A stretch of DNA of 64,000 nucleotides from assembly GCF_032062105.1 (NCBI RefSeq), contig NW_026925239.1, positions 62,001 to 126,000 on the forward strand. Direction: 5' to 3'. The notes under the pieces are model-generated. The model was not told the origin of the DNA and did not search any database. It saw only the letters and a program-made list of their open reading frames with translations. Positions 58,934-64,000 of the stretch are shown piece after piece (positions within the stretch are counted from its first letter, which is position 1; each line of letters starts with the position of its first letter). The DNA comes from Saccostrea cucullata. Its lineage: Eukaryota. A program made the position numbers and the translations under genes.

Positions 58934-59733
58934 TTAATAAGGCACAACATGCTATCCACACCCTCTGACAAATATGGAATTCTAAAGCACTCTTTATCAA
59001 CAGCAAAATCAGGATTTTTAACACAAATGTTCAAGTAGTTCTCCAATATGATTCTGAGACTTGGAAAGTAACTAAAAGAATAAACAGCAAATTACAGTCT
59101 TTTATCAACAAATGTTTCCGCCATATCCTTGACATCAGATGGCCTGAAACCATATCGAACAACAGCCTATGGGAGAGAAACAACCAAAATCCTATAGATA
59201 TTGACATCAGGAAGAGAAAACGGGGCTGGTTAGGCCACACTATACGCAAACCCTCGAACCACATCACTAAACAAGCTCTGGATTGGAATCCACAAGGAAA
59301 GAGGAGGGTTGGGAGACCAATCTAATTAAAATTAGATGTTTGATCCGCTCGCAGACTCACTATACTAACATCTAACAACATCCCATTGAGGGTCACATCT
59401 GAGGTCAATTTCTATCAACCAATCAAATCGTCACCTGCAAAATCATCATATATTTGCTGGAGCGAATAAGTCTAGAGTTGTTCCGAATGATCCTCTATGG
59501 GATGTTGTTAGATGTTAGCGTAGTGAGTATGCAAGTGGATCTAACATCTAATTTTAATTAGATTGGTTGGGAGACCCAAGGCAAACCTGGAGAAGGTCTG
59601 TAGAAATGGAAGCAAATGAAGCTGGATTTACCTGGACCCAATTAAAAAACATAGCCCAAAACAGAGTCGGATGGTGCAGTGTGGTTGCAGCCCTATGCTC
59701 CCCAAGGAGTGAACAGGAATAAGTAAGTCAAGT
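58934..59733 (+). mobile_element. 5'-truncated, decayed RTE-clade LINE
   Basis: Translates (with a stop and a frameshift) [65 protein letters not shown]; TAAG/CAAGT tail; TSD CAAACTGATGAA (58922-58933 / 59734-59745). Confidence 0.88.
59316..59567. mobile_element. Palindromic MITE inserted in the RTE remnant
   Basis: ACCAATCTAATTAAAATTAGATGTT... long TIRs; TGGGAG duplicated on both sides; removal restores RVGRPK. Confidence 0.85.
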
Positions 59734-59904
59734 CAAACTGATGAAACTTGATCTTCTAGCCAAGGTAAGTAAATACAGTACAAGGGTTATTGACCTTCAC
59801 TTTTCCACAATGAGAAATAAGTGTCAATTGCATATTTGCCCTCACAAATTTTTATATTCATTTGGTAGCTTAAAAAGAACAGACATTTGGCTTTCTACAC
59901 ATGC

Positions 59905-59910
59905 TTTATT
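59905..59910 (-). terminator. Candidate ZMYND8 polyadenylation signal
   Basis: Minus-strand AATAAA ~285 nt after the stop codon. Confidence 0.5.
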
Positions 59911-60195
59911 AAAAACAATATCCAACAATCATGGTATACATTATTAAAAAACATGCAGAAATCATTAACAACCATTAATGAATTGTCTTCTCATGCAGAA
60001 GACTAATACTTGTAATGAACAATGTATAATACTCAGTTAATGCCCAATCAAGGCCCCTCTCTGTCCATGTTTTTTTTTTCTGATGTGAACACCTCAGAGA
60101 ACAGTGCTTGAAGAGACTCTTCAATTATGTCTTCTGACAGAAAATGAGTACACGATTATGAAAGCATCACAAGATTCATCTGAAAAGATCAGAAA

Positions 60196-60501
60196 TTAAA
60201 ACCGTCCATGATATGCCAGATTGTTTGTCATGACCTGTTGGTGCTGGTTGGGTTGTGTGACAACCATTGGGGGGCCCTGTGGGGGGTGTTGGCCTGTGTG
60301 GGAGATGATCATGGAACCCGCTGGGGGTACTTGAGGGTTGGTCTGGGAGATGACCACTGGCCCTCCGTTGATGAGGGAGGGGCCGGCCTGTGAGATCTGG
60401 ATGGGGTAGAGGACTGAGCCACCAGGAGGTAGGATCTGGTGCCCAGGAGCCATGATTGTTTGTGGTGCCCCCTGTGGCTGAGGTCCTGGAATTCTCATTG
60501 C
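60196..60501 (-). CDS. ZMYND8: ZMYND8 last coding exon (P/Q/G-rich)
   Basis: TTGTAG| AMRIPGPQ...YHGRF*; phase 0. Confidence 0.85.
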   Translation of the reverse strand, partial: AMRIPGPQPQGAPQTIMAPGHQILPPGGSVLYPIQISQAGPSLINGGPVVISQTNPQVPPAGSMIISHTGQHPPQGPPMVVTQPNQHQQVMTNNLAYHGRF

Positions 60502-60663
60502 CTACAAGAAACATGTTCATATTTTAAATCATTTCTGGATGTAGTCAAATACGCCTGTTTTCTGCAAAATTCAAAAACATTGCATTTTCACACAGCTTGT
60601 TTTCCAGATTCCTTGATTCTCAAAAAGATTTTTTTTTTATAGGAATTGAGAGCACTAAGTCTC

Positions 60664-60848
60664 TACTTTATTTTGATAAATGAAATGGGACAAAGAGTGT
60701 TAGTCAATCAATTGATTTAAGTGCAGGGCCATTTTATGCATAAAGTACTCCTGCATAAAGTACTTTATTTTGATAAATGAAATGGGACAAAGAGTGTTAG
60801 TCAATCAATTGATTTAAGTGCAGGGCCATTTTATGCATAAAGTACTCC
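60664..60848. repeat. Recent perfect tandem duplication (~97-bp period), intronic
   Basis: TACTTTATTTTGATAAATGAAATGG...GCATAAAGTACTCC occurs twice. Confidence 0.9.
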
Positions 60849-60914
60849 TAGCTCTTTGTACATTGTACAAGTATACAAATGTACTTGCATGTATTACTAA
60901 TGTTAGCCACTTAC

Positions 60915-61046
60915 CTGTTGAGTGGAGTTGAGGGGTTGAACACTTGAGGGTGGTTGAACTAATGGCTGAGGGGGCCCCACATACTGGAACTGAACAGGTG
61001 GGGTAGAGAGAGGCTGATTTCCTGTCACTGACTGAGGAAGTGGCAT
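60915..61046 (-). CDS. ZMYND8: ZMYND8 exon (P/Q-rich, 44 codons)
   Basis: TGTCAG| MPLPQSVTGNQPLSTPPVQFQYVGPPQPLVQPPSSVQPLNSTQQ |GTAAGT; phase 0-0. Confidence 0.85.
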
Positions 61047-61229
61047 CTGACAAAAAAAATAATCTTATATAATATTATCTTCTTTCTAATAACAGAACTG
61101 ATAGTTTAAAATTTCCTCCTTTTTAAAACTTGCATTATGAGGAGAGATGCTGACTTTTTAAACAATCTCCAACCCATCTCCCCTTTCCTTTATAAAATTA
61201 TAACTCAGACTCTTTATATCTGTACTTAC

Positions 61230-61385
61230 TCTGCCTCCCACTCTCTCGGTGAGAATTTTACGGGGGACGTTGAAGATTTTGGAGGCCTTGTTGACAGACA
61301 TTCCATCCTTCAGTACAGCAGACACAGCCTGGTCCATTGTCTGATCTGTCCAGTAATAGTTTGGCTTCTTACGGCCTCCATCATC
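61230..61385 (-). CDS. ZMYND8: ZMYND8 exon encoding a Pipsqueak/CENP-B-type helix-turn-helix (52 codons)
   Basis: TTTTTAACAG| DDGGRKKPNYYWTDQTMDQAVSAVLKDGMSVNKASKIFNVPRKILTERVGGR |GTAAGT; phase 0-0, in frame with both neighbours. Confidence 0.8.
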
Positions 61386-61646
61386 CTGTTAAAAAATATA
61401 TTTACAATAAACAAGATATTTCTGTAAACAAAAGTTTACGTCTCTCTGAAGTCTTATATATAGACAGAGGTATTATAAGCAGCTACATATTGTTTTTTTT
61501 TTGGGGGAGAAGAAATTATATTTGCTGTACCTTTGGAATAACAAGCTGAGTTCAAGACAACACTGAATTGTCGAGTGTCACTTGAACATCTACAAGATAC
61601 TGTATTGTGCACCCTGAATAACAAAATTAAGAAATGAGGTACTCAC

Positions 61647-61832
61647 AATCATCATTCTCTGTTGCTGTAAATACTGAGGTGGGATGTTGGGCGGGGCCAT
61701 TGGATTAGCTCCGCCCCCTGACAGATACTGGATGTTTGCCATTGGTTGTTGTGGGGGATTCTGTATTCTCTGTTGTTGCTGTTGAAGAATGTTTGTAAGA
61801 TTCTCTCTCGAGGCTCTCCTGAAATCCTCACT
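61647..61832 (-). CDS. ZMYND8: ZMYND8 exon (Q/P-rich, 62 codons)
   Basis: CATCAG| SEDFRRASRENL...QQQRMMI |GTGAGT; phase 0-0. Confidence 0.87.
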
Positions 61833-61925
61833 CTGATGGAAAATCAAGAATACATACAGTCTTAAAAATGCAATTCCTTACTCTCATATATTGTAAATAT
61901 AAATTGAGTTGAAAAAAATATTCAC

Positions 61926-62189
61926 CTCTATTTCCAGGGGGCTCGAGGATGGAGGTGCCCCTGTCATGCTGGAGGATTGAGGTGGCCTGTCCCTCGGGTT
62001 GCTATGACTACTGGACCTCCCGGAGGCATTTGATTGGTTGTTTCCTTCTGATGTGTTTGTGTCATTGTTATTCTGGGTCTGCATACAGACTGGCATGTGG
62101 GTAGGCCAGTGTATCTGTTGACAGGGATAGTCACAATAGCTTGTGTTCCAACAGCAGTAAAATATAGCCTCCTTACCACAGTTTGCACA
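61926..62189 (-). CDS. ZMYND8: ZMYND8 MYND zinc-finger exon
   Basis: [35 protein letters not shown], near-identical to the ZMYND8 MYND finger ([28 protein letters not shown]); 264 nt, phase 0-0. Confidence 0.95.
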
Positions 62190-62278
62190 CTGTCAAATAA
62201 AAAGGTATGTTCACTGTCAGAGAAATACTGCAAGCATTATATCAGTTACTTGGCCTGGTAAATGAGAGAGTTTACAGA

Positions 62279-63212
62279 AACAAGAAATCTGTGAGCCAAT
62301 GCTCACTAGTAATACCCCCGCTCTGATGTAAATAAGCACTATCACTAATATACACAAGTTTAATTACAGACAGATGCACAAAAAAAAATATGAAGTTGAC
62401 ATCAGATTCATATCGAAATTAATCCTACTATATGGCATGCCTCAACAAAAAGTGTACTAAAATTTCAAGCATCTGCTATGAATAATTAAAGAGAAAACTG
62501 TGACAAAGCTTTGTTATATATATAAAACAGACAGACGCACAGACAAATAGGAATTTGACATCAGATTTTAACAAAAATGTATCCCACCATATGGCATGCC
62601 TCTGAGAAGATTGTGTTAAAATTTCAAGCATCTGCGATGAGTAATTGCTGAGAAAACTGCAACAAAAATTTGTTACGTATGAAACAGACAGACGCACAGA
62701 CAAACAGGAAGTTGACATAAGATTTTAACAAAAATGTATCCCACCATATGGCATGCTTTAGAGAAGATTGTATTAACATTTCAAGCATCTGCGATGAGTA
62801 GTTGCTAAGAAAACTGTGACAAAACTTTATGTATGAAACGGACAGATGCACAGAAAAACAGGAAGTTGACATCAGATTTGAACAAAAATGTATCCCACAG
62901 TATGACATGCCTCAAAGAAGATTGTGTTAAAATTTCAAGCATATGCGATAAGTAGTTGATGAGAAAACTGTGACGAAAATTTGTTATGCATGTAACGGAC
63001 AGACGCACAGACAAACAGGAAGTTGACATCGGATTTGAACAAAAATGTATCCCACTGTATGGCATTCCTCAGAGAAGATTCTGTTGAAATTTCAAGCATC
63101 TGCGATGAGTAGTTGCTGAGAAAACTGAGACAAAAATTTGTTACGGACTGACACACAGACAGACACACAAGGGGAAAACAGTATACCCCCCTCTCCTTTG
63201 GTCGGGGGTATA
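62279..63212 (-). mobile_element. HINE-type element (family C) with ~157-bp array
   Basis: Minus strand TTATACCCCCG..GGGGGTATA hairpin, GTCT microsatellite, ~5 units, 3' GCGGGGGTAT + GTGAGC-ATTG-GCTCAC hairpin + CTTGTT. Confidence 0.85.
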
Positions 63213-63262
63213 AATATACAGTTTCATATCTTGTAATTAGGTGCTGTTGTATGTATTTTTAC

Positions 63263-63387
63263 CCATTGTTTTTTCTTGGTTTCATTAACAGTTTTCTCCA
63301 GTTCTTTGGTGTGAGCAGCCTTTAAATCCACAATGATTCGCTGCTTTTCTGCCTCCCACAAAGTTTTCATCTCAGCCACAGTCAATT
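63263..63387 (-). CDS. ZMYND8: ZMYND8 coiled-coil exon preceding MYND; gene continues beyond the right edge
   Basis: ELTVAEMKTLWEAEKQRIIVDLKAAHTKELEKTVNETKKKQW matches ZMYND8 ELTMAEM...AVDETKKKQW; phase 1-0. Confidence 0.93.
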
Positions 63388-64000
63388 CTGTTGTACGAAA
63401 TATCTAGTCTGAGTGTGAAGGTTAAAGTGTTTAGGATTCGACTAAGTGCTAGGGTTAGGCCTAAGCCTAGGTGCAAGGGATGAAGAAATCATTGCCAGTG
63501 CTAAAATTTCCAATAATAATTTTTACATTGAAAAATTTCACTCTTCGATTTTTCTACCTTCCCAAAAATCTTTTAAACTGTATTTGACTTCATATACCAG
63601 TATATCCATTTTCTCAGTGCAATTCCTAGTATTCAATGATTTCCACTAAAAACTGTTTCCATCTTAAACAAAACATAGGTAATCAGAGATTACAGAGCTC
63701 ACCTTAATGAATGTTGTCTTTAAGTAAGGCAAATTAAGTCACACAATTAACCAACAAAAAGTGTACATCCAAAAATGCAAAATTTATGCAATTTTGATAC
63801 TTTGGAATAGACCTATATATTAAAAACTTAAAACTAGTTCTTCATCATGAAAATGTAATTAAAATCCAGCATCTGAAGCAAGATTGAGAGTTTTCATCCC
63901 TCGATGCATCATTTGTGCAACTTTGGTTTATATAAGCCTTATAGTTTCTTGGTGATAGACCTGCACCCATAACTTTTACGAGGTATATTATCTGGAAAAT

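Follow-up and report, generated by a model that had tools for sequence, protein, structure and literature searches.

The gene described here belongs to the same family as ZMYND8 (RACK7/PRKCBP1) of vertebrates and other invertebrates, and has the same PHD-bromodomain-PWWP-coiled coil-MYND core. The MYND finger of vertebrate ZMYND8 recruits corepressor partners, and it is via zinc-finger partners bound by this finger that the protein reaches specific DNA. To our knowledge, ZMYND8 has been studied as a reader of histone marks without a sequence-reading domain of its own. While approximately 120 inspected ZMYND8 orthologues outside Pteriomorphia showed no HTH_psq domain, the tail of pteriomorph ZMYND8 contains an additional folded helix-turn-helix (HTH).

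Three other groups of proteins contain comparable HTHs. LCoR and LCORL (PDB 2COB for the HTH) resemble pteriomorph ZMYND8 in that a single psq-type three-helix HTH is found in a transcriptional corepressor, but the HTHs of LCoR and ZMYND8 are only about 25% identical, their host proteins are unrelated, and LCoR has the motif P-x-S-T-L where the ZMYND8 clade has VPR-x-[IKR]-[LI]. Pogo/Tigger elements and CENP-B-type derivatives share a psq/CENP-B_N-type HTH preceded by a basic stretch. Some matches in our representative search combine HTH_psq with HTH_Tnp_Tc5 and DDE_1, whereas the ZMYND8 locus is without the latter two, and its HTH, unlike that of pogo or CENP-B, forms one of the internal exons in a host gene and is single-copy in the genome. 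Pipsqueak, E93/Mblk-1 and Brinker have DNA-binding HTHs of the same HTH_psq or the related Brk class; Pipsqueak and E93 use tandem psq repeats, in contrast to the one psq copy of ZMYND8, which is placed in a chromatin-reader scaffold.

Host regulators are known to have captured transposase HTHs in other cases, and automated annotation of several bivalve proteins already shows the psq domain. Literature searches found no papers joining ZMYND8 and a psq domain. As far as could be checked, the clade-wide distribution of the domain, its genomic absences elsewhere, its constitutive splicing and the strength of its constraint are new. We believe it probable, on the joint evidence, that the HTH is encoded by a constitutive exon gained a single time on the pteriomorph stem, likely from a pogo source, and that it serves as a putative DNA-contact module.

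The HTH exon in the tail of ZMYND8

The window, which is the whole stretch of 64,000 nucleotides analysed from Saccostrea cucullata, contains the C-terminal part of the gene on its minus strand (Table 1). An exhaustive search with the 52-aa peptide of the HTH exon returned P0001, a public S. cucullata protein of 1562 aa, with 100% identity at residues 1366-1417. Pfam assigned PHD, bromodomain, PWWP, ZMYND8_CC, MYND and HTH_psq domains to P0001, and its best 120 full-length matches were all ZMYND8/PRKCBP1. P0001 thereby shows both the PHD-bromodomain-PWWP arrangement with coiled coil and ZMYND8/11-type MYND finger and the nearest relatives that define a ZMYND8 orthologue, and the HTH exon is a real coding exon of that orthologue. 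By tblastn, the C-terminal part of P0001 was mapped to six exons of the window, from 63388 down to 60199, with the N-terminal ZMYND8 exons directly upstream on the same contig. Pfam scans of the window were done exon by exon, the public P0001 serving as the full-length protein in place of a joined window model.

Table 1. Exons of the C-terminal part of ZMYND8 in the window
Feature	Position	Strand	P0001 residues	Evidence
Last ZMYND8 coiled-coil exon	63263..63388	-	1174-1215	PF23460 ZMYND8_CC 53.5 bits; tblastn
MYND zinc-finger exon and S/N-rich linker	61926..62189	-	1216-1303	PF24324 52.1 bits, PF01753 31 bits; tblastn
Q/P-rich exon directly upstream of HTH exon	61647..61832	-	1304-1365	tblastn, RNA depth, junction in 977-nt contig
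HTH_psq exon of ZMYND8 (156 nt)	61230..61385	-	1366-1417	Pfam, splice sites, junction reads
Q/P-rich exon directly downstream of HTH exon, phase 0-0	60915..61046	-	1418-1461	junctions, tblastn
Terminal coding exon, P/Q-rich, with stop codon	60199..60501	-	1462-1562	100% tblastn; junction reads 35, 25, 22

On sequence inspection, the stretch from 61385 to 61230 on the minus strand forms a phase 0-0 exon of 156 nt, or 52 codons, bordered by a T-rich tract and AG before 61385 and by GTAAGT after 61230. The sequence-only reading of this DNA had proposed just such an exon with good splice sites, and sequence, translation and RNA junction reads all agree with it; the peptide that it quoted is present in the 52-residue translation. 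Its placement of the exon after the MYND finger and between two Q/P-rich exons was borne out by Pfam scans of the neighbouring exons and by the map of P0001. The reading had also stated that the exon is absent from the program-made list of open reading frames. The exon is indeed not intact in that list, which holds just a piece of 59 aa that begins from an internal ATG, so that a piece is present, and the observation is trivial for an internal exon. RefSeq isoforms X1 and X2 of S. cucullata ZMYND8, whose only difference is 8 residues within the PWWP region, already include the HTH exon, and the exon is thus not new to public annotation.

In the exon, a basic arm (RKKP) precedes three helices. 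Pfam HTH_psq (PF05225) matched exon residues 14-49 with 35.6 bits (E = 7.5e-9) when the exon peptide was scored alone, well above the curated gathering cut-off of 20.4 bits, and orthologues scored 27-33 bits. The earlier identification of a psq-type HTH is therefore confirmed by a profile match above the cut-off, with which the fold and the LCoR match described below agree. The motif [IV]-P-x-x-T-L of the family is not intact in the exon; the deviation is of one residue only, and the profile score and three-helix fold still place the exon in the HTH_psq family. It had been noted that the T of P-x-x-T-L is replaced by I in the oyster. This is correct, and the whole clade has I, K or R there: following an invariant VPR, the position is I in oysters, K in Pinctada, Mytilus and Tegillarca, and R in scallops. 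Across the aligned sequences, the missing T is a signature of the clade and not an oddity of the oyster.

The HTH lies about 115 residues past the MYND finger, inside an otherwise disordered Q/P-rich tail, and a Pfam scan of the Q/P-rich exons flanking it gave no family match. Loose ends of RNA reads at 62190, the edge of the MYND exon, continue into the coiled-coil exon. The intron between these two exons contains, at window positions 62400-63250, several copies of a repeat of about 150-300 bp, which have similar minus-strand open frames in different phases (recurring ...SNYSSQMLE...WDTFL.KSDVNFLF...).

Source of the HTH

In the 1.17-Gb genome, the 52-aa peptide has no close copy apart from the exon itself, and the next-ranked hits are 39-48% identical; a recent exonisation from an active element was rejected on these grounds. 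Within this genome, the best paralogues are N-termini of pogo-type transposases; the ZMYND8 HTH profile matched them with 33-42 bits, and they have in common with it the helix-2 signature GMSV-x-KAS...VP, the basic arm and W-T-D. Three of these loci (L008, L010 and L011) have a psq HTH followed by long transposase frames, and in a fourth (L007) N-W-T-D-E-A-M comes after a basic arm. The similarity to pogo is about 40-50% over some 45 residues. A pogo-type transposase N-terminal HTH is, by this sequence comparison, the most likely source. We propose that the HTH was gained once on the pteriomorph stem and then kept under strong purifying selection, and that the Tc5 HTH and the catalytic domain of the element would have been either never captured or lost.

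Pfam gave no Tc5 or DDE_1 match in the HTH exon, its neighbours or P0001, and of the combination that marks a pogo/Tigger-derived gene (psq with HTH_Tnp_Tc5 and DDE_1 or a remnant of it), only the first HTH was found. Relatives outside ZMYND8 in the global search were at most 51% identical, and were a mixed set including multi-psq proteins, fungal psq proteins and transposases with Tc5 and DDE_1, for which reason no specific donor can be named. The earlier suggestion that the exon was exonised from a pogo-like transposase thus agrees with the paralogues of the same genome, while it is matched neither by a nameable donor nor by a Tc5/DDE remnant.

Instead of a transposon, the donor could have been a host psq gene (LCoR, E93 or Pipsqueak-like), with the HTH transferred by exon shuffling. 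The presence of one HTH with no trace of Tc5 or DDE and the mixed set of relatives would fit such an origin, as would the fact that the corepressor LCoR is both the only sequence-detectable solved structure and the top structural match. Against it, the best paralogues in the same genome are the pogo N-termini with their shared basic arm and helix-2 signature, and transposon remnants are expected to be lost after several hundred million years. We regard an origin from a host gene as rather unlikely, from a donor comparison that covered the paralogues of this genome and the relatives returned by the global search.

As a separate observation, L008, L010 and L011 (contigs C15311, C17083 and C19478) represent a multi-copy pogo-type element with open frames of 379-600 aa. 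Because its copies are nearly identical, this element may have been recently active in this oyster genome.

Fold, conservation and predicted function

Mean identity to P0001 was calculated for each segment of the protein, both among oysters and in a wider set of oyster, mussels and scallops (Table 2). In oysters, the conservation of the HTH core equals that of the MYND finger and is above that of the bromodomain. An alignment of 11 pteriomorph segments showed invariant residues W, A, A, V, G, S, N, K, A, K, V, P, R and R, corresponding to the hydrophobic core and to polar or basic positions on helices 2 and 3. The allele found in RNA differs from the window at 10 of the 156 nt of the exon, and eight of these differences are synonymous. 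By codon arithmetic, the changes at 61263, 61293, 61305 and 61338 fall on third-codon positions in P41, V31, D27 and T16 and are all synonymous; the start of the exon has four further synonymous changes, together with one codon that turns the Gly of residue 3 into Ala; this residue is not part of the domain. All differences between RNA and window in the 41 codons of the HTH core are synonymous. These comparisons indicate that the HTH is under strong purifying selection.

Table 2. Mean identity to P0001 by segment of ZMYND8
Segment	Oysters (Saccostrea, Ostrea, Crassostrea)	Oyster, mussels and scallops
HTH core	0.99	0.52
MYND finger	0.99	0.89
PHD	0.97	0.84
Bromodomain	0.95	0.84
PWWP	0.95	0.83
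Coiled coil	0.87	0.56
Flanking Q/P exons	0.77-0.90	0.16-0.37
Whole protein	0.69	0.41

AlphaFold2, run with the alignment of 11 sequences, predicted three helices (segment residues 20-32, 37-44 and 48-55) with a core pLDDT of 91-93 and disordered flanks. The HTH of LCoR (2COB) was the only solved relative detected by sequence (E = 3.4e-5), and was also the top Foldseek match to the HTH model with a probability of 1.00, followed by homeodomain-type DNA binders with weak scores. The HTH core has 10 K/R against 4 D/E and a pI of 10.2, and the basic arm before it is RKKP in oysters and KKKP in Argopecten. On helices 2 and 3, the surface has the invariant residues S, N, K, K, R and R. The HTH probably contacts DNA directly. 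It would thereby give ZMYND8 direct contact with DNA in cis, in addition to the reading of histone tails by the N-terminal cassette, and this putative contact would help position the corepressor partners recruited by the MYND finger. ZMYND8 has a coiled coil, and if the protein dimerises, as has been reported, the dimer would present two HTHs. Psq-type HTHs often occur in tandem (Pipsqueak has four, and CENP-B and pogo pair psq with Tc5); since they often act in this way, the lone copy of ZMYND8 may bind weakly or non-specifically.

The main rival to the predicted DNA contact is a role in protein interaction, in which the HTH would be a conserved surface of the tail for a protein, for example a corepressor partner, or for RNA, and would not bind DNA. 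A single psq copy without a partner Tc5 HTH, the replacement of the canonical T in the motif of the recognition helix, and the setting among disordered Q/P-rich exons that are typical of interaction tails would all be in keeping with such a surface. We consider it unlikely, however, given the strongly basic character of the domain, the conservation of its basic N-terminal arm and the invariant K, R, N and S residues on helices 2 and 3, and because both its nearest solved relative and its neighbours by structure are HTHs that bind DNA. DNA binding is also reported for psq-like HTHs that occur singly, such as those of Brinker and LCoR.

Other DNA-binding domains were observed in bivalve ZMYND8 proteins. 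Scallop ZMYND8 has a second, N-terminal pair of pogo type (a BrkDBD-like HTH and HTH_Tnp_Tc5) before the PHD finger, at residues 123-244 of P0144, 107-228 of P0154 and 123-166 of P0111. In Ylistrum, isoform X1 includes both members of the pair, X2 the first only and X3 neither. No domain comparable to the scallop pair was found in the N-termini of oyster and Mytilus coruscus ZMYND8. A ZMYND8-like isoform X2 of Mytilus edulis (P0153) has an N-terminal THAP domain, another transposase-derived DNA-binding fold, at residues 4-90 (51.5 bits). THAP was absent from the N-terminus of M. coruscus (P0152) and gave no match in the M. edulis model P0105, and the M. edulis THAP may be an alternative first exon or a fusion of models.

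A stronger form of the DNA-contact reading is that pteriomorph ZMYND8 is a sequence-specific DNA-binding corepressor, whose HTH was domesticated from a pogo transposase on the pteriomorph stem, several hundred million years ago, and continues to recognise terminal repeats like those of pogo or a derived motif. We put this forward as a speculation that is quite unlikely to hold. If it did, the reader and its NuRD-type partners would be steered in cis to transposon-derived sites, the vertebrate counterpart being separate zinc-finger partners that act in trans, and the scallop N-terminal pair and the mussel THAP would be further rounds of the same process.

Splicing and distribution of the exon

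Transcription was examined over window positions 59400-62300 with three oligo-dT RNA-seq runs (X21, X22 and X23) of one study, for which the tissue is not given, and with the RNA contig set X1. Reads were filtered at 95% identity, and junctions were listed from 3 reads with 2 different starts. The junction at the donor of the HTH exon (61046|61230) was covered by 49, 35 and 33 reads in X21, X22 and X23, or 117 in total, and the junction 60500|60914 by 35, 25 and 22 reads. At the acceptor of the exon (about 61385|61647-61648), the three runs gave 0, 1 and 0 spliced reads, together with one contig of 977 nt. The low count is explained by a variant exon start (DDAG... in RNA versus DDGG... in the window), which caused reads to fall under the 95% identity filter. 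Eighteen reads with loose ends at 61648, nine each in X21 and X22, run into this variant start when reverse complemented, with a consensus that matches the beginning of the HTH exon at 98-100%. What looks like an extra letter at the acceptor junction comes from the final base of the upstream exon, where T>C is a synonymous change.

The sequence-only reading had treated the exon as a cassette that could give isoforms with and without the HTH. Both inclusion junctions that it named for counting (61230>61046 and 61647>61385) are supported, but the skip junction 61647>61046 did not reach the listing threshold in any of the three runs, compared to 117 inclusion reads. Additionally, the exon was kept in all five RefSeq isoforms checked (two of Saccostrea and three of Ylistrum), and cluster P0151, in which the HTH is included, represents 656 members taken from Logan assemblies of public runs. 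The exon has the symmetric phase of a cassette (156 nt, 0-0), while transcripts that skip it were not found; the suggestion of two isoform classes was not upheld, and the HTH exon is effectively constitutive in the sampled RNA. It could still be a regulated cassette, with HTH-less isoforms made in tissues or stages outside the RNA sample. Its phase symmetry means that the reading frame survives skipping, the adjacent exons are likewise in phase 0, and scallop ZMYND8 includes its N-terminal HTH exons alternatively. This possibility is nevertheless very unlikely in view of the inclusion reads without a listed skip junction in three runs, the loose ends at 61648 that match the exon start, the retention of the exon in RefSeq isoforms of two species, and its inclusion in the 656-member cluster.

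RNA reads under the same species label were nearly all 95-99% identical to the window over 59400-62300, and not at least 99% identical. As the reads are only this similar, the RNA sample and the assembly seem to be different haplotypes or cryptic lineages of the S. cucullata complex. The DDAG start of the HTH exon in RNA is the variant found in the S. echinata protein. RNA depth was zero over 61825-62018, which covers the S/N-rich part of the MYND exon and an intron of 93 nt (61925-61833), across which no junction was listed. The two Saccostrea proteins differ in the S/N-rich linker by clustered substitutions and two indels, and the zero depth is probably due to a diverged allele failing the 95% filter.

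Pfam detected HTH_psq after the MYND finger in Saccostrea (two species), Ostrea, Crassostrea, Mytilus (two species), Ylistrum, Argopecten and Pinctada. One in-frame HTH exon after the MYND finger was present in all five pteriomorph orders sampled, namely Ostreida, Pteriida, Pectinida, Mytilida and Arcida. HTH_psq was not listed in the ZMYND8 proteins of unionids, Ruditapes, Mya, Solemya, gastropods, a chiton and cephalopods, nor in those of the annelid Owenia, amphioxus, a hemichordate and vertebrates; the inspected proteins left out arthropods, echinoderms, cnidarians, brachiopods and others. When the last 500 residues of ten non-pteriomorph ZMYND8 models were scanned, the coiled coil and MYND finger were found, with no HTH_psq at E <= 1. 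A word search with the HTH region returned only oysters, but such a search needs shared 5-mers and is therefore uninformative on absence.

Because an exon may be missing from a gene model, a profile built from the pteriomorph HTH was run against all six reading frames of genomic loci; the MYND exon, included as positive control, was found in every locus. The HTH exon was detected in Pinctada (Pteriida; L016, 22836-22982, 98 bits) and Tegillarca (Arcida; L015, 37471-37611, 68 bits), in both as a single in-frame exon with the same boundaries. None was detected in Sinanodonta (Unionida; L012), Solemya (Protobranchia; L013), Haliotis (Gastropoda; L014), Ruditapes (Venerida; L017) or Mya (Myida; L018). 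These five loci are gap-free (no N) and were extended by 10 kb on either side of the gene; on both strands, nothing HTH-like scored above 9.2 bits, while the MYND exon scored 56-70 bits. The search can be taken as sensitive, since the divergent Tegillarca exon was detected at 68 bits. An artefact of gene models behind the absences was rejected, as the five complete loci gave at most 9.2 bits in six frames.

The simplest history suggested by these sequences is one gain on the stem of Pteriomorphia, whose split is placed in the early Palaeozoic, on the order of 450-500 million years ago. The gain had been proposed as lineage-specific, to be checked across molluscs and annelids; the exon is conserved in related bivalves and absent outside Pteriomorphia where checked, while the level of the gain is all Pteriomorphia, a clade wider than one oyster lineage. 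An ancestral psq exon lost repeatedly outside Pteriomorphia, for which one can cite that absence may reflect loss and that several phyla lie outside the sample, is extremely improbable, as it needs separate losses in Heteroconchia, Protobranchia, gastropods, cephalopods and chitons and further ones in annelids, hemichordates, cephalochordates and vertebrates, versus a single gain.

Two public gene models were seen to be incomplete at these loci. In Tegillarca granosa (L015:32509-37611), annotated ZMYND8 ends at 872 aa with bromodomain and PWWP only; this model is truncated, as the exons for coiled coil, MYND and HTH are found further downstream and are not part of it. In Pinctada imbricata (L016:1-24709), ZMYND8 is split into two adjacent models, one of 857 aa with bromodomain and PWWP and another of 628 aa with coiled coil, MYND and HTH. 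The HTH exon is useful in exposing such truncated and split models, and it is a molecular character uniting Pteriomorphia. Several bivalve orders, including the main farmed species, keep a DNA-binding-type HTH in ZMYND8 that is as strongly constrained as the MYND finger. Should the HTH bind DNA, these bivalves would offer a natural experiment on the addition of cis targeting to a reader/corepressor scaffold, and the exon would be a clean and datable case of a single transposase-type HTH captured as one exon.
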